10,519 bases of DNA from Trichoplax adhaerens (Eukaryota; Animalia; Placozoa), in contig NW_002061054.1 of NCBI RefSeq assembly GCF_000150275.1, positions 3,913 through 14,431 of the forward strand. Reading direction: 5' to 3'. Shown here one piece after another: positions 245 through 10,219 of this stretch. Made by a program: the position numbers and the translations under genes. Positions within the stretch are counted from its first letter, which is position 1. Each line of letters opens with the position of its first letter. The notes beneath the pieces were generated by a model, which did not search any database, was not told where the DNA came from, and was given only the letters and a program-made list of their open reading frames with translations.

Positions 245-535
245 CTAAAAAGGGGCGATAAAAGTAAAATTCTCAGTTTGTTACTAAACATTTTTACAGC
301 TATTGATTGCTGAAATATTGTCAATTGTGTAAAAAGGACATGGTATGAAATTACCGCATAATTTACGCCTATTGTGTGAGACTCGAAGGCATGATAATAA
401 TTTTTATGCAGGTGTCAGCAATAGAATAAGTATTCAATTAACTGGATATTAATGTATATACACTGAATATTGCAGTATGCTTAGAAGAATGAATTAGTAT
501 TTGATGTTTGCGATTAAGCTACTTTTCGATCTTAC

Positions 536-701
536 CGTTTACGTCTTCTAGTAGTATTATTCATCACTAGAGGAGAATAACTATGAACTCTATGCGACTT
601 CTGCAGGCGTTGACGTTTAAGTACGTAATATTCTTTTAACAGCTTTATACCCTCGTACATAAATGATAACGCAAACCAAGCTAAGGTCGTGCCAATTAAA
701 C
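536..701 (-). CDS. SLC31A1: Ctr/SLC31 copper transporter, copy A, middle coding exon (TM1 + cytoplasmic loop)
   Basis: The 166-bp exon reads (G)LIGTTLAWFALSFMYEGIKLLKEYYVLKRQRLQKSHRVHSYSPLVMNNTTRRRK(R). YEGIK is the conserved Ctr YEGLK motif after TM1. Acceptor ataag| precedes 701 (phase 1). Donor CG|GTAAGA follows 536 (phase 2), matching the phase of the exon at 244. Confidence 0.88.
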
Positions 702-1212
702 CTTATCGGATAAATAAATCAAAGATGTAACAGGTTAAGCAACTTGAAGTATTTGATTGAATTTCGCAAACCAGATTAGGTTATGTTATTCATTTATAAC
801 TCATTATGTAATATAATTGTTCTTTACACTAAAATGGCTAGTTGAATTTAAGCATTGAACAAGTAGTTGATGTGGTACTTATTCAACGAGTATTTAAAAC
901 ATTCAAAATTTAAGATATGATATTTCTAAATAGTTATGTGATTTCGATATGTTCGGACTCTATGACATATCGTTGAACATCACGCCAAACACATAGTCAT
1001 TACTAAATTAAAAATATCTATATACTTTATTATCCTATCATTAGTGCCATCTATGCGGTCATGCAGTACATTGAAAACTAAATGCCTCTACGATCAACAC
1101 GATGCGGAGATGATTCAGGATCAAAATAGGCTTTATTATTTATTTTAACCATGCACAACAACGGGAGGGATTGAGATAGAGACCACGAGATAGTGAAGCA
1201 TGAGCTGTTTTC

Positions 1213-2184
1213 TACAGCTAAAGACAGTACTGTACATACTGTTTAATAGTCGCTATCGAACTTAGAGTACCGTCAAACTGATATTAACTAAACCTATCTT
1301 TATCAGTAGGAGTATAAGTGCAATAGATACCTTGTCATCAAAATCAGCACAAGTAAATACAGTACCTTAACGCATGTCAGCGCATCTATGTTGATACAAT
1401 ATATTACAATTAGCTTATAAATTCAAGTAATTTAATATACAGTACAGTACAGTACAGTCCAGCACTGTAACCCTACAGTACTGTACAGCACAAAGTACTA
1501 GTGTACAATGTACTGTATATTACAGTCACTGGAGGTTTGCATGGTCTGGTCTACTGTAGTCTAGTTGAATACTGTGAGTCAGTGCGTTTAATCTACAGTA
1601 CTGCATTGGGATTTTCAAAGCCCCTTTTGAGTCAAAATATGAATTGTTGGTTGTGATTGAGTTGTAGAAACTAAATTTCAGATCGGGCTACGCCAAGAAC
1701 AGTAAATTCTGTCAGGGACTTCTAATAAGGGGAATTTCTTCTTTAAAAAGTCCTGATTCCGTCGCTGTAAATCTTTGCTTACTATGATACAGAGCTGACA
1801 TTGACCAGGCAGACCAGATAGAGTGCATCGTTAATACAGTGCAGTGCAGTATATTGATTTACTGTATTTATTGAATCCACACAATACAGAACAGTAAATT
1901 CCGTCAGGGACTTCTAATAAGGGGAATTTCCTCTTTAAAAAGTCCTGATTCCGTCGCTGCAAATCTTTGCTTACTATGATACAGAGCTAACATTGACCAG
2001 GCAGACCAGATAGAGTGCATCGTTAATACTGTACAGTACTGTATATTGATTTACAGTATTTATTGAATCCACACAATACAGTACTGTACAGTACTGTACA
2101 GTACATACTGTATCATCGTTTAAGCTAATGTATTTACTATGAGTATCTGAGTAATCGTGGTGTACAGTACAGCACAATACTGTA
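1213..2184. repeat. Cluster of TA(CAG/CTG)TA motifs and (TACWG)n arrays; putative Tc1/mariner excision footprints
   Basis: More than 20 TACAGTA/TACTGTA heptamers in about 1 kb, e.g. 1228, 1358, 1438-1457, 1474-1485, 1511, 1552, 1594, 1860, 2052, 2077-2103, 2163, 2178. Several correspond to a bare TA in the paralogous copies. Confidence 0.7.
1696..2080. repeat. 192-bp direct tandem duplication specific to copy A (units 1696-1887 and 1888-~2080)
   Basis: agaacagtaaatt(c/t)...gaatccacacaatac occurs twice with a 192-bp offset. It is single-copy in B (~5890-6080) and C (~9684-9875). Confidence 0.95.
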
Positions 2185-2569
2185 GGCTCGTACGATACGG
2201 TCGTTCATAACGGCTCATAATTTTTAACTAAATCTCGTGAAATCCATGGAAACCATTCATCCAAATTTGCAATGTGGCAATCACATGATTTTCTCTGCAA
2301 TATTTTTTATTATTAAGTTATTTGTTTACTTGTACGTGATGTGCCCTCTGTCTACAATCTCTTTCCTTCACTTTTAATTAAGACACAGAGTAAAAGTTTA
2401 AACAAACAAAAGAGTCTAAAATTTCAAAAAATGTCCGGACAATAGAGTTGGAAGCACTTCAAATGATTACAATACTGTCGCTAACTGTTGTCAATCGACA
2501 TTACGTCAAGTAAAAAAAAGCTTATAGCACGTGTTCCTCGTTAAGTGTACTAAGGCTATTTACAATAGG

Positions 2570-2576
2570 TGCACTC
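2570..2576 (+). promoter_or_regulatory. Candidate metal-response element core (TGCRCNC) in the divergent Ctr/EPDR intergenic region
   Basis: TGCACTC at 2570-2576 is conserved in copy B (6487-6493). The same 9-mer TGCACTCTA lies on the minus strand around 1821-1827, 2013-2019, 6015-6021 and 9809-9815. Motif match only. Confidence 0.25.
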
Positions 2577-2789
2577 TACAAGGTAGCTAAGCTGCTCAAC
2601 CTATAGTACTGCAGCGTATGCTCGGTAATTTGAAGGATTTTTAACCTTAATTTAAGTTGAAAGCTTTCTTAATAAGCAAACAATAGCCTCAGTTAGCTTT
2701 AAATATACTACAGAGCTTCAAATAAAATTCACTTCTTCCTGAATTGCTTTGAGTTTGTTATCGACTCTACTTTTAAATAAAACACAGAT

Positions 2790-3563
2790 ATGTATCGTTT
2801 TTTGATTCTTGTCTCTCTCGTTGGTATTGCTATTGCAACTGCACCTAAACCATGCTGTACACCAAAGCAATGGGAAGGTGTTGTTGAAACAGCCGACATG
2901 AATGTCGTTGGAAGCGGAAAAACTGCTATGAACTCGACCTTTCGCGTTTTAATGCATATTTCATATGATTACCAAAATAGCAAGATTAGAGTTGATCAGG
3001 ACATATATCTAACTGGTGGTAAGACAGTCCATCATACAGTCATCGGCGACTATAAGAAAGGAAAGCTCTATTCTATTCTCAACGGCCATTGCCTCTCAGC
3101 TTCCATCAAATCACCAATGCCCGAGGCCTGCGTTCCTGAGATCGCTACTTTTTATATGGCAGGTACGCTTGGAGCTACATTAAAGTATAATACCTTCGCT
3201 TATTCCAAAAAAGATGGATCCTTGGGAGCGATAATTGATGTATCTGCAACGGGTTGCATTCCAATTGCCGTATTAGCTTTCCAGAAAGCAAAGATGCAGG
3301 GTAAAGCTATTACCAAATATAAAGCAGCTTGGTTCAAGAACATTACTGCAGGAATCAAAGACTCCTCAGTTTTCGACAAGCCGAAAGAATGCAAGCCCAT
3401 TGGAGATTCGGAAAATATCGTTGTTGACTTTGATTACTTGAAGTACTTCCAGTCTCGTCTCTTTACGGTATCTAGAGAAAATAAGATGTACTTACAGGAA
3501 TCCATTGAAGATCTCTTCCGCAAAGACTCCGTTAGACGCTTGCATGAAACATTCCTATTTTAG
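2790..3563 (+). CDS. EPDR1: Ependymin-related protein (EPDR/MERP family), secreted/lysosomal, 257 aa, intronless; copy A
   Basis: Signal peptide MYRFLILVSLVGIAIA. Family N-terminal motif PKPCCTPKQWEG, then ISYDYQNSKIR, GDYKKGKLY, conserved Cys in GHCL, EACVP and TGCIPI, and the C-terminal FKNITAGIKDSSVFDKPKEC motif. N-glycosylation sequons NST and NIT. The symbol denotes family only. Confidence 0.92.
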   Translation: MYRFLILVSLVGIAIATAPKPCCTPKQWEGVVETADMNVVGSGKTAMNSTFRVLMHISYDYQNSKIRVDQDIYLTGGKTVHHTVIGDYKKGKLYSILNGHCLSASIKSPMPEACVPEIATFYMAGTLGATLKYNTFAYSKKDGSLGAIIDVSATGCIPIAVLAFQKAKMQGKAITKYKAAWFKNITAGIKDSSVFDKPKECKPIGDSENIVVDFDYLKYFQSRLFTVSRENKMYLQESIEDLFRKDSVRRLHETFLF

Positions 3564-4566
3564 GCTGTCATAAACAATACTTGTACTAACAGCAAAGTAG
3601 ATCAGCTCGAATGATGAATCATATCTACATATACTATACAAGGCTACTCGATTCGGTGTGTAATACCTATATCTCCAAAATAGCTTACCTGTACAACCTA
3701 GACGTCCAGAATAATCTAATTGTAATGTAGTGTAGCGTTTGTAGGACGTTGTGATATGAGTAATAAGATGCTATCATCATCATATGTTCAACATTGCTGT
3801 ATAAATGTCAGCTACGAGATATATCAGCGCTGAAGTATTTTTAACATGTGTCTATGAGTCCCTATTATAATTATTAGACTGTAGATAATTTTAAATATAA
3901 GAGATATGGATGGGTACTGTTAAAGCAAAATAAAATATGTTTTAAAAAAAAGATATGAATATTTCTTTAAAAATAACATGGAATAGTTAAAGCAAATTAT
4001 TAGAAGCTTTTACAAACATAATGATTGTAAACTGCGAAGGCGATGGAATGCTGTGAATAATCGATTAGCAATTGTAATTTAACCGGAAGTAAACGCAGTA
4101 CATACTCGTACGTGTTGTTCATAGTTAGTACGTGGCACGTAAACAAGCGTGCCTAATTCGCTTGTTTCGTAGTAATTGCATGAGAACAGTTTAGAAATAC
4201 AAATAATATATGATTGTTATCCGTTAAGCGCTTACATCGGTTACTTCAATATTTAAACTAAGTTACTTTAAATTTTTAGTATTGCAACTACCATAGCGGC
4301 TTCAGGGTTTACGTTACCTCTTTATGCTTTCTGTGTTAAGCTACCTATAGATTTAAGACCTATCTGTGATTTTATAACACTATATAGTATTTAGAAAGAT
4401 GCTTAAATCGCCGCCATTTCTTTCTGTTAGATGTATTGGAAAGTACAAAAGACCACAATATGACATATTAGCATGTTTCATATACCAATAAAGATTTCCA
4501 TGTTAAGAAGATAAATCCGACCGCTTGATAACGAGTCAATAAATTACGAGGATGGCTTTTGATAAC

Positions 4567-4616
4567 NNNNNNNNNNNNNNNNNNNNNNNNNNNNNNNNNN
4601 NNNNNNNNNNNNNNNN
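4567..4616. other. Assembly gap (50 N, placeholder size)
   Basis: Run of N. If copy B is complete, the gap must hide at least ~1.2 kb including Ctr exons 2-3. Confidence 0.99.
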
Positions 4617-4923
4617 ACAGCTAAAGACTGTACATTACTGTACTGTATATACTGTTTAATAGTCACTATCGAACTTAGAGTACCGTCAAACTGATATTAA
4701 CTAAACCTATCTTTATCAGTAGGAGTATAAGTGCAACAGATACCTTGTCACCAAAATTAGCACAAGTAAATACCTTAACGCATGTCAGCGCATCTATGTT
4801 GATACAATATATTACAATTAGCTTATAAATTCAAGTAATTTAATATACTGTACTGTAAAGGGTTCGAAGGGAAAATATAATTATATAATGAATGTTACCA
4901 TATATCAGTACATGTAATTTTAC

Positions 4924-5002
4924 CTCCAGCGGTTTTAACATTCCAAGACTGGAATAACACGATCACTTTGTTACCGAAATGGAAAAACATGTGCATCATC
5001 AT
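4924..5002 (-). CDS. SLC31A1: Ctr/SLC31 copper transporter, copy B, first coding exon
   Basis: caccATG start. Reads MMMHMFFHFGNKVIVLFQSWNVKTAG(G), the Ctr M-x-F-x-F-G...LF..W.V...G N-terminal motif. Phase-1 donor G|GTAAAA matches the phase-1 acceptor of exon 2. An upstream ctaat...tttctttcatgtctctag acceptor near 5052 suggests a 5'UTR intron. Confidence 0.87.
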
Positions 5003-6701
5003 GGTGAAATTGATAATACAGTCAACATAATCAGCTTGATGTAGTTTTCTGCTAGAGACATGAAAGAAATAAGAGATTAGTACGTTGTAAAATTACAAGT
5101 GGAATCAATCCATCGAACGCGCAATATTCTCCTCTAGAAGTTGTTTGTTCGTTTACCGTTATGATTACTAATACGTTGGTGTATCAGTCAATCTTGACAG
5201 CATCGATCATGGAGATAAGAATAAAGATTAAAGTGAAAACGCTATCATTCACATCATCTAATAATCTGTATAACTTGAGTTCGATGTAAAATGCTTCGTT
5301 GTGCCAAACTGTACAGAAATTCTTCTAAGTATTCTACGTCGAAATAGTATAATAACCAAGTCATACAAAATGCATCAATATCAATGGAAGACTTATGTAG
5401 AAGAGAACTGTACAGTATAGTAATCTATGTAAAACAACTTGGCATGATTAACGTCTTTAAGATCAGAAATCAATTGGTTCATTTTATCTTATCTATTTAC
5501 ATAATTTAGATTAGCGATTGCTGTGACCGTTCGAAATTTTCCCTCAGGCTCAGCTCACGAGTGATAGGAATGGGATGGGACGGCACAACGGCTTCGGCAC
5601 CTTTATACTGTAATGGATAGCAATGAGCAAGAGAAGTACGTACTGTACGGTACGGATATAGTACAGTATACAGTACAAAGTACTAGTGTACAATGTACTG
5701 TAAAATACAGTCACTAGAGGTCTGCATGGTCTGGTCTGGTCTTGTCTAGTTGAATACTGTGAGAGTGTGAGTCAGTGCGTTTAATCTACAGCATTGGGAT
5801 TTTCAAAGCCCTTTTAAGTCAAAATATGAATTGTTGGTTGTGATGGAGTTGTGTCTTGAAGAAACTAAATTTCAGATCGGGCTACGCCAAGAACAGTAAA
5901 TTCCGTCAGGGACTTCTAATAAGGGGAATTTCTTCTTTAAAAAGTCCTAATTCTGTCGTTGCAAATCTTTACTTACTATGATACAGAGCTGACATTGACC
6001 AGGCAGACCAGATAGAGTGCATCGTTAATACAGTCAGTGCAGTATATTGATTTACTGTATTTATTGAATCCACACAATACAGTACTGTACATACTGTATC
6101 ATCGTTTAAGCTAATGTACTTACTATGAGTATCTGAGTAATCGTGGTGATTATGTACCGTGGTGTAATTCATCCAAATTTGCAATGTGGCAATCACACGA
6201 TTTTCTCTCCTATAATTTTTATTATTAATTTATTTACTTGTACGTGATATGCCCTTTGTCTACAATCTCTTTCCTGAACTTTTAATTAAGACACCGAGTA
6301 AAAGTTCAAACAAACAAAAGAATCTAAAATTTCAAAAAATGTCCAGACAATAGAGTTGACAGCACTTCAAATGATTACAATACTGTCGCTAACTGTTATC
6401 AATCGACATTACGTCAAGTAAAAAAAAAGGTTACAGGCTTACAGCGCGTATTCCTCGTTAAGTGTACTAAGGCTATTTACAATTGGTGCACTCTACAAGG
6501 TAGCTAAGCTGCTCAATCTATAGTACTGCAGCGTATGCTCGGTAGTTTGAAGGATTTTCAAGCTTAAGTTGAAAGCCTTCTTAATAAGCAAATAATAGCC
6601 TCAGTTAGCTTTAAATACGCTACAGAGCTTCAAATAAAATTCACTTCTCCCTGAATTGCTTTGAGTTCGTTATCGACTCTACTTTCAAATAAAACACAGA
6701 C

Positions 6702-7432
6702 ATGTATCGTTTTTTGATTCTTGTCTCTCTCGTTGGTATTGCTATTGCAACTGCACCTAAACCATGCTGTACACCAAAGCAATGGGAAGGTGTTGTTGAA
6801 ACAGCCGACATGAATGTCGTTGGAAGCGGAAAAACTGCTATGAACTCGACCTTTCGCGTTTTAATGCATATTTCATATGATTACCAAAATAGCAAGATTA
6901 GAGTTGATCAGGACATATATCTAACTGGTGGTAAGACAGTCCATCATACAGTCATCGGCGACTATAAGAAAGGAAAGCTCTATTCTATTCTCAACGGCCA
7001 TTGCCTCTCAGCTTCCATCAAATCACCAATGCCCGAGGCCTGCGTTCCTGAGATCGCTACTTTTTATATGGCAGGTACGCTTGGAGCTACATTAAAGTAT
7101 AATACCTTCGCTTATTCCAAAAAAGATGGATCCTTGGGAGCGATAATTGATGTATCTGCAACGGGTTGCATTCCAATTGCCGTATTAGCTTTCCAGAAAG
7201 CAAAGATGCAGGGTAAAGCTATTACCAAATATAAAGCAGCTTGGTTCAAGAACATTACTGCAGGAATCAAAGACTCCTCAGTTTTCGACAAGCCGAAAGA
7301 ATGCAAGCCCATTGGAGATTCGGAAAATATCGTTGTTGACTTTGATTACTTGAAGTACTTCCAGTCTCGTCTCTTTACGGTATCTAGAGAAAATAAGATG
7401 TACTTACAGGAATCCATTGAAGATCTCTTCCG
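6702..7432 (+). CDS. EPDR1: Ependymin-related protein, copy B; 3' end lost in assembly gap
   Basis: Appears nucleotide-identical to 2790-3520 up to the N run. The ORF-track tail ...XXXAIDC comes from reading through the gap. Confidence 0.88.
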
Positions 7433-7482
7433 NNNNNNNNNNNNNNNNNNNNNNNNNNNNNNNNNNNNNNNNNNNNNNNNNN
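7433..7482. other. Assembly gap (50 N, placeholder size)
   Basis: Run of N. Expected to contain the end of EPDR-B and the last exon of Ctr-C. Confidence 0.99.
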
Positions 7483-7728
7483 CAGCTATTGATTGCTGAA
7501 ATATTGTCAATTGTGTAAAAAAGACATGGTATGAAATTACCGCATAATTTACGCCTATTATCTGAGACTCGAAGGCATGATAATAAATTTTATGCAGGTG
7601 TACACCAGCAATAGAATAAGTATTCAATTAACTGGATATTAATGTATGTATACACTGAATATTGCAGTATGCTTAGAAGAATGAATTAGTATTTGATGTT
7701 TTGCGATTAAGCTACTTTTCGATCTTAC

Positions 7729-7894
7729 CGTTTAGGTCTTCTAATAGTATTATCCGCCACTATAGGGGAATAACTATGAACTCTATGCAACTTCTGTAGG
7801 CGTTGGCGTTTAAGTACGTAATATTCTTTTAACAGCTTTATACCCTCGTACATAAATGATAACGCAAACCAAGCTAAGGTCGTGCCAATTAAAC
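7729..7894 (-). CDS. SLC31A1: Ctr/SLC31 copper transporter, copy C, middle coding exon
   Basis: 166 bp with the same splice sites as 536-701. Reads (G)LIGTTLAWFALSFMYEGIKLLKEYYVLKRQRLQKLHRVHSYSPIVADNTIRRPK(R). Confidence 0.88.
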
Positions 7895-8714
7895 CTTATC
7901 GGATAAATAAATCAAGGATATAACAGGTCTTTAAGCAACTTGAAGTATTTAATTGAATTTCCCAAACCAGATCATATTATGTTATTCATTTATAACTCAT
8001 TATATAATATAATTGTTCTTTGCACTAAAATGGCTAGTTGAATTGAATTTAAGCATTGAACAAGTAGTTGATGTGATACTTATTCAACGAGTATTTAAAA
8101 CATTCAAAATTTAAGAGATGACATTTCTAAATAGTTATGTGATTTCGATATGTTAGGACTCTAAGATATATCGTTGAACATCACGCCAAACACATAGTCA
8201 TTACTAAATTAAAAATATTTATTTACTTTATTATCCTATCATTAGTGCCATCTACAGTATGCGGTCATGCAGTACATTGAAAACTAAATGCCACTACGAT
8301 CAACACGATGCGGAGATGATTCAGGATCAAAATAGGCTTTATTTTAACCATGTACTACTACGAGAGGGATTGAGATAGAGACCACGAGATAGTGAAGCAT
8401 GGGCTGTTTTCTACTGTACAGCTAAAGACAGTACATACTGTTTAATAGTCACTATCGAACTTAGAGTACCGTCAAACTGATATTAACTAAACCTATCTTT
8501 ATCAGTAGTACTGTAGTATACAGTAAGTGCAACTGATACCATGTCATCAAAATTAGCACAAGAAAATACCTTAACGCATGTCAGCGCATCTATGTTGATA
8601 CAATATATTACAATTAGCTTATAAATTCAAGTAATTTAATATACTGTAAAGGGTTCGAAGGGAAAATGTAATTATATAATAAGTGCTACCATATATCAGT
8701 ACGTGTAACTTTAC

Positions 8715-8793
8715 CTCCAGCGGTTGTAACATTCCAAGACTGGAATAACACGATCACTTTGTTACCGAAATGGAAAAACATGTGCATCATCAT
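8715..8793 (-). CDS. SLC31A1: Ctr/SLC31 copper transporter, copy C, first coding exon
   Basis: Reads MMMHMFFHFGNKVIVLFQSWNVTTAG(G) with donor G|GTAAAG. Splices in frame to 7894 across an 820-bp intron. Confidence 0.88.
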
Positions 8794-10219
8794 GGTGAAA
8801 TTGATAATACAATCAACATACAGTAATCAGCTTGATGTAGTTTTCTGCTAGACATGAAAGAAATAAGGGATTATTACGTTGTAGCATTACAAATGGAATC
8901 AATCCATCGAGCGCGCAATATTCTCCACTAGAAGTTGTTTGTTCGTTTACCGTTATGATTACTAATACGTTGGTGTATCAGTCAATCTTGACAACATCGA
9001 TCATGGGGATAAGAATAAAGATTAAAGTGAAAACGCTATCATTCACATCGTCTAATAATCTGTATAACTTGAGTTCGATGTAAAATGCTTCGTCATGCAA
9101 AACTGTATAGAAATTCTTCTAACCATTCTACGTCGAAATAGTATAATAACCAAGTCATACAAATGCATCAATATCAATGGAAGACTTATGTAGGTTAGAA
9201 CTGTATAGTAATCTATGTAAAACAACTTGGCATGATTAACGTCTTTAAGATCAGAAATCAATTGGTTCATTTTATTTTATCTTATCTACTTACATAATTT
9301 CGATTGGCGATAGCTGTGACCGTTCGAAATTTTCCCTCAGGCTCAGCTCACGAGTGATAGGAAAGGGATAGGACGGCACAACGACTTCGGCACCTTTATA
9401 CTGTAATGGATAGCAATGAGCAAGAGAAGTACGGTAGGGGTACAGTACAGTATACAGTACAAAGTACTAGTGTACAATGTACTGTACAATACAGTCACTA
9501 GAGGTCTGCATGGTCTGGTCTGGTCTAGTCTAGTTGAATACTGTGAGAGTGTGAGTCAGTGCGTTTAATCTACTGTACAGTACAGCATTGGGATTTTCAA
9601 AGCCCTTTTAAGTCAAAATATGAATTGTTGGTTGTGATTGAATTGTGTCTTGAAGAAACTAAATTTCAGATCGGGCTACACCAAGAACAGTAAATTCCGT
9701 TAGAGACTTCTAATAAGGGGAATTTCTTCTTTAAAAAGTTCTGATTTCGTCGCTGCAAATCTTTACTTACTATGATACAGAGCTGACATTGACCAGGCAG
9801 ACCAGATAGAGTGCATCGTTAATACAGTCAGTGCAATATATTGATTTACTGGATTTATTGAATCCACACAATACAGTACAGTGAAAATTCACATAACTTC
9901 ATTCATAATTTGAGTTTGCGAGTGCTAGAGATCTGCATTAAAGTCGAAAAGTTTGTTTTAATTTGTGAATACCGTACAATATACAATACACAGTCCTAAA
10001 TTGCCGAGGGGGTAATTCGAGTCAGACTGGAATAATGCATTATGTAAGTACGTATTCACAAATGTTTCCAATGCGTGGATGGTTCGTGAAACGTCAGCAA
10101 GTCATGCAAGCTGTAACTTTCACTATTACTAATCACTTGTACAGGATATTATATTAATCGACAATAGTATTACTTGCAGAGATTATCCCACAGGGTGCAA
10201 AAATGAATTGTATTAATGT

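Follow-up and report, generated by a model that had tools for sequence, protein, structure and literature searches.

TA-bounded insertions of CAGTA or CTGTA between paralogous copies of a Trichoplax adhaerens locus, and a possible transposon-footprint origin of the (ACAGT)n microsatellite

A 10,519-nt stretch of the Trichoplax adhaerens genome (hereafter the window; C1303:3913-14431 within the 105.6-Mb assembly of 1414 contigs) holds one unit in three paralogous copies, A (297-4566), B (4617-7432) and C (7483-~9880). The upstream region of each copy is rich in TACAG and TACTG, and in A and B a single-exon ependymin-like gene (PF00811) comes after it. Comparison of these copies with one another and with two further ones in the same assembly, D (C1413:5321296-5326570) and E (on C1039, nearest to copy B), revealed that plain TA dinucleotides have repeatedly become TA-CAG-TA or TA-CTG-TA. 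The events are insertions, they keep to the TA register, they run from empty to filled, both forms are mixed, and the resulting heptamers TACAGTA and TACTGTA (together TACWGTA) occur in excess genome-wide. We propose that a TA-specific insertional process produces them, here and throughout the genome, and that this process would consist in a CAG-ended cut-and-paste element of the Tc1/pogo group inserting and being excised again afterwards. Such a Tc1/pogo-type excision-footprint origin is the best-fitting explanation of the data, one in which our confidence is evenly divided.

Nine pairs of empty and filled sites had been listed in an earlier note on this DNA, and every coordinate was correct. 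All are exact CWGTA insertions at TA, of five nucleotides or a multiple of five, with the duplicated TA flanking every scar. None of the compared sites crosses an assembly gap, and copy B begins at the site of A1213. The empty TA of copy A at 1052-1053 has its filled partner, a TACAGTA, at 8253-8259 in copy C; copy D lacks this stretch, and the comparison is that of A with C. Copy C alone carries TACTGTA at 8412-8418 (A1213 and D are empty) and TACAGTA at 8819-8825 (plain TA in B5028, D and E), and TACAGTA at 1358-1364 is found in copy A only (plain TA in B4771, C8567, D and E). Two separate 5-bp insertions lie in copy C at 8509-8525, TACTGTA at 8509 and TACAGTA at 8519, neither of which is present in A (site A1315), B or D; the earlier list had paired A1315 with C8519, and the insertion at C8509 is additional. 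Copy A has an extra TACTGTA at 1228-1234 beside a CAGTA unit, where a single unit stands at C8432 and four, including a mutated one, in B and D. TACAGTA at 5411-5417 occurs in B and D, the number of extra units being zero at C9204 and two in E. TACTGTA of copy A at 1552-1558 corresponds to TA at C9526, and A also lacks one GGTCT unit here. Three units (central letters T, A, A) at 9571-9585 in copy C stand against two (A, T) at A1594-1603 and one each at B5787-5791 and in D and E.

Among the arrays, copy B has two TACTG units at 4846-4857, where C, D and E have one, and at 5636-5660 (the B5640 site) the extra units number none in C, three in D and in E, and in B two that fall 1 nt short, with a pair of TACGG units coming after the array. 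A mixed TACAG/TACTG array of copy A (1438-1492) is located where A misses a 780-nt segment of B, C, D and E, and the mixed-orientation arrays with which the second 192-nt tandem unit of A ends (2027-2112) exceed those of B by 15 nt, with runs at 2027-2043 and 2077-2103 and then TACTGTA at 2106-2112. TACTGTA (27 occurrences) and TACAGTA (24) are the two most frequent 7-mers in the window.

At three of the empty sites (A1052, B4771 and B5028) no CAG or CTG lies beside the TA, so the earlier observation that some sites lack an adjacent template holds there. Contigs assembled from other public sequencing runs show the filled forms at both 8253 and 8819 without alteration, the former ungapped in runs X3 and X6 and the latter with 0 differences in runs X1, X3 and X6. 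Since these runs are independent, neither site is a consensus error, an objection that the earlier note had itself raised. A -5 difference at 8819 in run X4 was rejected as an allele, the contig matching paralogue D at three neighbouring differences. The run contigs also give +10 at 9202 and -10 at 9571, which are not separable from paralogue contigs.

Pairwise global alignments were used to classify the indels, and an indel was counted as a unit if it was an exact cyclic permutation of TACWG, as 10 of the 1024 possible 5-mers are. Upstream of the genes, units made up six of 12 indels between A and C, six of 11 between B and C, and seven of 13 between C and D; on the gene side they made up none of three. 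With so few qualifying 5-mers, a share of about half excludes chance, and the excess of 5-bp CWGTA indels between paralogues anticipated in the earlier note is thereby established. Unit events upstream amount to about one per 8-10 substitutions. The remaining upstream indels are ordinary and comprise tandem duplications (TTGAA, ATTTT), changes of 1-4 nt and a few larger differences.

Five sites, one in copy A (A1358) and four in copy C (C8412, C8509, C8519 and C8819), are filled in one of the five copies compared and plain TA in the other three or four. The copy tree has no outgroup, and polarity was argued over all possible roots. As the root cannot sit on the A and C branches both, the A-only set, the C-only set or both must be insertions, and with the root on any other branch all A-only and C-only sites are insertions. 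The alternative that all of these differences are deletions from an ancestral (TACWG)n satellite, named beforehand as a possible refutation, fails, because A-only and C-only sites cannot both be deletions. Insertions that turned TA into TA-CWG-TA truly occurred, and the filled state is derived relative to the empty TA.

The pattern extends well beyond the window. In a genome sample drawn from the seven largest scaffolds as 20 pieces of 10 kb, which amount to 190 kb when N is excluded, TACWGTA was counted 271 times, compared with 40 expected under an order-1 and 65 under an order-2 Markov background, which bears out the excess that the earlier note had suggested looking for, and the heptamers rank among the commonest 7-mers despite their G and C content. 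Heptamer density is 4.9 per kb in the window and 1.4 per kb in the sample, so that the hotspot of the earlier note is real as a local peak but belongs to a genome-wide feature and is not unique. Single heptamers account for 199 of the 229 sample arrays (87%). For 133 lone heptamers, nothing unit-like lies within 15 nt, and their flanks resemble those of any TA site, with no Sleeping Beauty-like ATATATAT target preference, a result that is neutral for the footprint hypothesis. Among the 64 words of the form TA-NNN-TA in the sample, CAG (7.7x) and CTG (5.7x) are the sole strongly enriched ones, and their transition derivatives CGG and CCG rank next at ~3x. Single-substitution neighbours of the heptamer have an observed/expected ratio (O/E) of 2.1 for transitions vs 1.5 for transversions, a halo that looks like what is expected from a founder heptamer decaying neutrally. 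Heptamers are also clustered, with 47 spacings of 6-50 nt in the sample vs 14.5 expected. The ~3x enriched TACGGTA and TACCGTA have a counterpart in the window, where TACGG units adjoin TACWG units at 5648-5657, and these TACGG units may be related to an 'ACGG' insulation motif that others ascribe to terminal inverted repeats (TIRs) of Mutator elements (PMC12817080, PMC12221973).

The register of the heptamer was assessed by counting stretches whose agreement with the periodic pattern extends over precisely 7 nt, using a conservative order-2 expectation. Those starting at TA numbered 97 vs 42 expected, while in none of the other four registers (5, 23, 26 and 3) was the expectation exceeded; for 12-nt runs the TA register gave 7 vs 0.1 expected. 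Enrichment in the TA register alone implies that the generating process is TA-bounded on both sides, an outcome that neither slippage nor array-templated repair would predict. The central letters of neighbouring units were the same in 25 cases and different in 17 in the sample, and the same in five and different in nine in the window; newly added units often differ from their neighbour in this letter (C8412, A1228, A1594, B5411). This mixing indicates that new units are mostly independent events and not copies of the adjacent unit, and units with either letter are what mismatch resolution of a footprint would be expected to give.

Under the proposed excision-footprint mechanism, the element would be cut with a 3-nt stagger that leaves CAG overhangs on both donor ends; pairing of the two overhangs would leave an A.A mismatch in the centre, from which end joining would yield either heptamer. 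Mixed arrays and clusters may have built up through reinsertion into the TAs of existing scars together with local hopping, the clusters themselves may reflect either local hopping or a bias towards open promoter DNA, and the source element may be lost, very rare or unassembled. The mixed TACAG/TACTG arrays formed in this way would be the known (ACAGT)n microsatellite. By rough inference, with unit events at about one per 8-10 substitutions, high copy number would be unneeded, since in a largely clonal lineage a handful of active copies moving at ordinary rates would be enough; the hyperactive element envisaged in the earlier note is not shown by these data.

This scheme follows excision of Sleeping Beauty-type elements, in which 3-nt CAG overhangs anneal with a central mismatch and the repaired site reads TACAGTA or TACTGTA (PMC6943129). 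The Trichoplax heptamers are identical to that footprint, with a duplicated TA round CAG or CTG, both forms, and +5 relative to the empty TA, and the likeness claimed in the earlier note agrees with the published scar. Unlike Sleeping Beauty footprints, the Trichoplax scars have no known donor or active transposase, are stacked in arrays, are concentrated near promoters, and number ~1e5 per 105-Mb genome as extrapolated from the 190-kb sample. The pattern fits a footprint in sequence, target, polarity and the two forms, and a footprint is the best-fitting explanation, though its key witness, an element or an active transposase, did not turn up in the partial search. Internal eliminated sequences of Paramecium, which are TA-bounded, have the ends TAYAGYNR, are Tc1/mariner-like and are excised precisely to one TA during development, offer a second comparison. 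The likeness lies in the TA boundaries and in TAYAG-like ends derived from Tc1/mariner, and in Paramecium a domesticated transposase acts; the Trichoplax product differs in being a +5 scar, and nothing indicates developmental elimination.

Several observations weigh against an origin by excision. Some differences among the copies do not fit plain +5 insertion, namely TATA vs TACTGTA (+3) at A1474, central-letter flips without length change, a 9-nt and a 6-nt difference, and the renewal of a degenerate array to three perfect units at A 2027-2043. The promoter link (PMC2871265) and the insulation link (PMC12817080) of the arrays are atypical for Tc1/mariner integration. Transposable elements (TEs) make up 0.13% of the T. 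adhaerens genome, with none active; the same 2010 survey reported one family of MITEs (miniature inverted-repeat transposable elements) with ~20 copies and 11 Mariner/Tc1 fragments (PMC2871265). The CAG-ended Tc1/mariner source proposed in the earlier note, the absence of which was there named as a refuting result, did not come to light in a partial search, which yielded neither a TA-flanked element nor an intact DD34E transposase.

That search comprised profile searches of the whole assembly with DDE_3, HTH_Tnp_Tc3_2, mariner Transposase_1 (PF01359) and pogo DDE_1 and, for inverted-repeat structure, scans of ~300 kb and of the transposase-like loci round the matches. No TA-flanked CAGT...ACTG inverted pair with matching inner 30 nt was present in the ~300 kb, where arrays matched only themselves, and no such donor showed up at the transposase-like loci. 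The single DDE_3 open reading frame (ORF), of 358 aa, has no TIRs, and its first catalytic Asp appears replaced as judged by eye. The three single-copy pogo-like DDE_1 ORFs (525, 413 and 412 aa) likewise have no TIRs. Mariner PF01359 had no match in the assembly, but the control genomes gave none either. No full element at these TAs, for which the earlier note had hoped, was seen in the contigs of four runs, which are short, gappy over the arrays and mixed with contigs of paralogues D and E. Taken together, this partial search without a donor counts against the footprint idea without killing it. Four degraded Tc1-like HTH_Tnp_Tc3_2 fragments in the assembly indicate that such elements once lived in this genome; the Tc1-like remnant at locus L004 is single-copy. 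The 525-aa pogo-like ORF (C1396:1272280-1273857, minus strand) keeps D, D and E, judged by eye, and on sequence the pogo-like ORFs are candidate domesticated transposases.

The array at A 2027-2043 reads as three perfect units (TACTG TACAG TACTG TA), and its counterparts at 1835-1851, 6029-6044 and 9823-9838 are degenerate TACAGT(G)CAGTGCAGTA of roughly equal length. The four differences in 17 nt, vs ~5% elsewhere, suggest array renewal rather than point mutation.

Several repeats were considered as the donor and rejected. Neither the 780-nt segment missing from A, nor a stretch of 144 nt that D lacks, nor the 192-nt tandem unit has TA plus CAG/CTG ends, the palindromic structure at locus L005 has ends that are not CAG, and a ~450-nt repeat at the Tc1-remnant locus L002 (2365-2817) is unrelated and has ends that are not CAG/CTG. 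The 780-nt segment (4858-5640; 8649-9430) is present in B, C, D and E and missing from A at 1436-1492; each of its borders falls within a TACWG array, the A junction is occupied by a mixed array, and A seems to have lost it through a deletion between arrays or in connection with repair. The 192-nt tandem unit (window 1696-2088; C1039:1-900) has a copy number of one in B, C and D, two in A and four in E. The ~450-nt repeat has at least 25 copies of 80-95% identity, some with ~210 extra nt inside, and a separate ~103-nt repeat (L002:300-403) has ~10 copies and no CAG/CTG ends; these two are more families than the single ~20-copy MITE family of 2010.

The main rival to a footprint origin is an array-templated process, a transposon-free self-propagating repeat in which breaks are repaired by copying a TACWG unit from nearby or in trans, be it by polymerase-theta-type templated insertion, gene conversion or strand switching at a near-palindrome. 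A template is usually near, given ~1.4 heptamers per kb and the presence of CAGTA or ACAGT 10-50 nt away from three de novo sites, and the central-letter flips, the +3 case and the renewal at A 2027-2043 resemble template switching at a near-palindrome; such repair also requires no element, which suits a TE-poor genome (PMC2871265). It should, however, use any microhomology in the unit, whereas enrichment is found in the TA register alone, and it should give inserts of variable length, whereas length is fixed at 5n. It further explains neither the birth of the first arrays nor why the insert is CWG. We consider templated copying a possible but rather unlikely source. Replication slippage of a pentanucleotide microsatellite, with point mutations making the second form, would account for gained units that match their neighbour (B4846; the three TACTG units of D and E at the B5640 site) and for the perfect 10-nt period at 2077-2104. 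It does not account for de novo single units at TA without an adjacent unit (A1052/C8253, A1358, C8819) or for new units with the other central letter (C8412, A1228, A1594, B5411), and the 87% of sample arrays that are single heptamers lie below any slippage threshold. Slippage is contradicted as the sole cause, for which we judge it quite improbable, and survives as a minor contributor to array growth.

A different reading holds that heptamers and arrays are selected promoter or insulator elements, or promoter-seeking Mutator ends (Kim et al. 2025), so that their enrichment reflects function and not mutational bias. In its favour, the 1 kb upstream of genes holds 54% of the ACAGT repeats (PMC2871265), insulation in T. 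adhaerens has been linked with a repeating ACAGT motif (PMC12817080), a promoter-hub motif has been assigned to Mutator TIRs (PMC12221973), and the window arrays lie upstream of ependymin-like gene copies. Selection cannot create 5-bp insertions at TA, and a generating process would still be required. Lone heptamers occupy flanks like those of any TA site, the halo of transition derivatives (O/E 2.1 vs 1.5) looks like neutral decay, and unit numbers vary freely between near-identical copies. Mutator elements duplicate 9-11 bp of their target, not TA, which speaks against Mutator ends. We think it improbable that function explains the enrichment; it may explain the persistence of arrays, not the birth of units. 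That the differences are artefacts of assembly or consensus in a small scaffold with gaps and many repeats is hinted at by the scaffold's size, its two gaps and the 100% identical coding sequences (CDS) in two copies, which suggest collapse. Against it stand the recurrence of filled 8253 and 8819 unchanged in independent-run contigs and the same pattern in the 20 random 10-kb pieces and in the literature (PMC2871265), and we give it hardly any credence.

The two assembly gaps of the window are each of 50 N with discontinuous flanks. Gap 1 (4567-4616) joins unique DNA 3' of the gene of copy A to the middle of a unit (the A1214 equivalent), so that ~0.9 kb of the region upstream in B is missing. 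Gap 2 (7433-7482) cuts the CDS of copy B 43 nt before its stop, and the sequence resumes at the A297 equivalent. ORFs that read through either gap are artefacts. The ependymin-like gene of copy A is a single exon on the plus strand (2790-3563; PF00811, E 1.2e-13), with TACWG arrays 600-1350 nt upstream of its ATG at 2790; that of copy B (6702-7432, plus strand) is truncated by gap 2 and 100% identical to it. Over their shared length (2790-3520, 6702-7432) the two CDS are identical, and the adjoining upstream DNA differs by 2.5-5%; this identity beside gap 2 points to recent gene conversion or assembly collapse.

Copy D is collinear with the left flank of the window, copy C and the right flank. 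There, the left flank directly abuts a C-like unit, followed by the right flank, without an ependymin-like gene between. The small scaffold of the window may represent a divergent haplotype or a duplicated locus with two extra units. A conserved dispersed element of ~115 nt (1073-1196; 8279-8395) has copies of 75-85% identity on four other scaffolds, each of which adjoins TACWG arrays, and has no Rfam match; the Rfam search of the window gave just weak hairpin-like miRNA matches over arrays.

The repeat itself has been described before, of which the earlier note was unaware. Wang et al. (2010), who counted perfect repeats >12 bp only, found (ACAGT)n dominant in T. adhaerens and located upstream of genes, and proposed a transcription-factor site without giving an origin (PMC2871265). 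A 40-nt string that these authors give for T. adhaerens contig ABGP01000361.1 occurs exactly in the present assembly, at locus L048. The window arrays share with that microsatellite the genome, the motif in both orientations and the upstream location; beyond it, what we see are mostly lone TA-bounded heptamers, born by 5-bp insertion at TA according to the paralogue comparison. That the events are TA-bounded insertions of two forms is new compared with what was described in 2010, and we found no paper in the open-access literature that proposes a footprint origin of (ACAGT)n. More recently, a placozoan promoter-hub motif was tied to automatically annotated Mutator TIRs by Kim et al. in 2025 (PMC12221973), and a 2026 paper tied a repeating ACAGT motif to chromatin insulation (PMC12817080). 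The Mutator-TIR promoter-hub motif and the ACGG/ACAGT insulation motifs are, like the heptamers, promoter-proximal, repeat-like, transposon-linked and from the same species, with TACGG beside TACWG at 5648-5657. The TA-bounded 5-bp insertions are not what Mutator elements leave, and any kinship between the heptamers and the promoter-hub motif is conjectural.

Tentatively, and with more doubt than for a footprint origin as such, we suggest that (ACAGT)n arrays may be the record of a CAG-ended Tc1/pogo element, or of a transposase-derived host enzyme, that was active at low copy number, over a long time until recently, in open promoter DNA; every excision would add a single 5-bp unit, and the arrays would then be footprints and not products of slippage, perhaps co-opted by the host for insulation. 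That a single pentanucleotide repeat dominates in Trichoplax has stood as a curiosity since 2010, and this repeat is now being linked to promoters and insulation. The window gives direct evidence of how a unit is born, by a 5-bp insertion at TA with either central letter, and with it a concrete, testable mechanism. If the footprint mechanism is true, a whole microsatellite class could be created by transposon excision scars, a nearly TE-free genome could hold a dense historical record of transposition, and the automatic 'Mutator TIR' annotations at placozoan promoters may need re-examination. If it is wrong, an element-free, TA-specific and sequence-constant insertion process would be stranger still.

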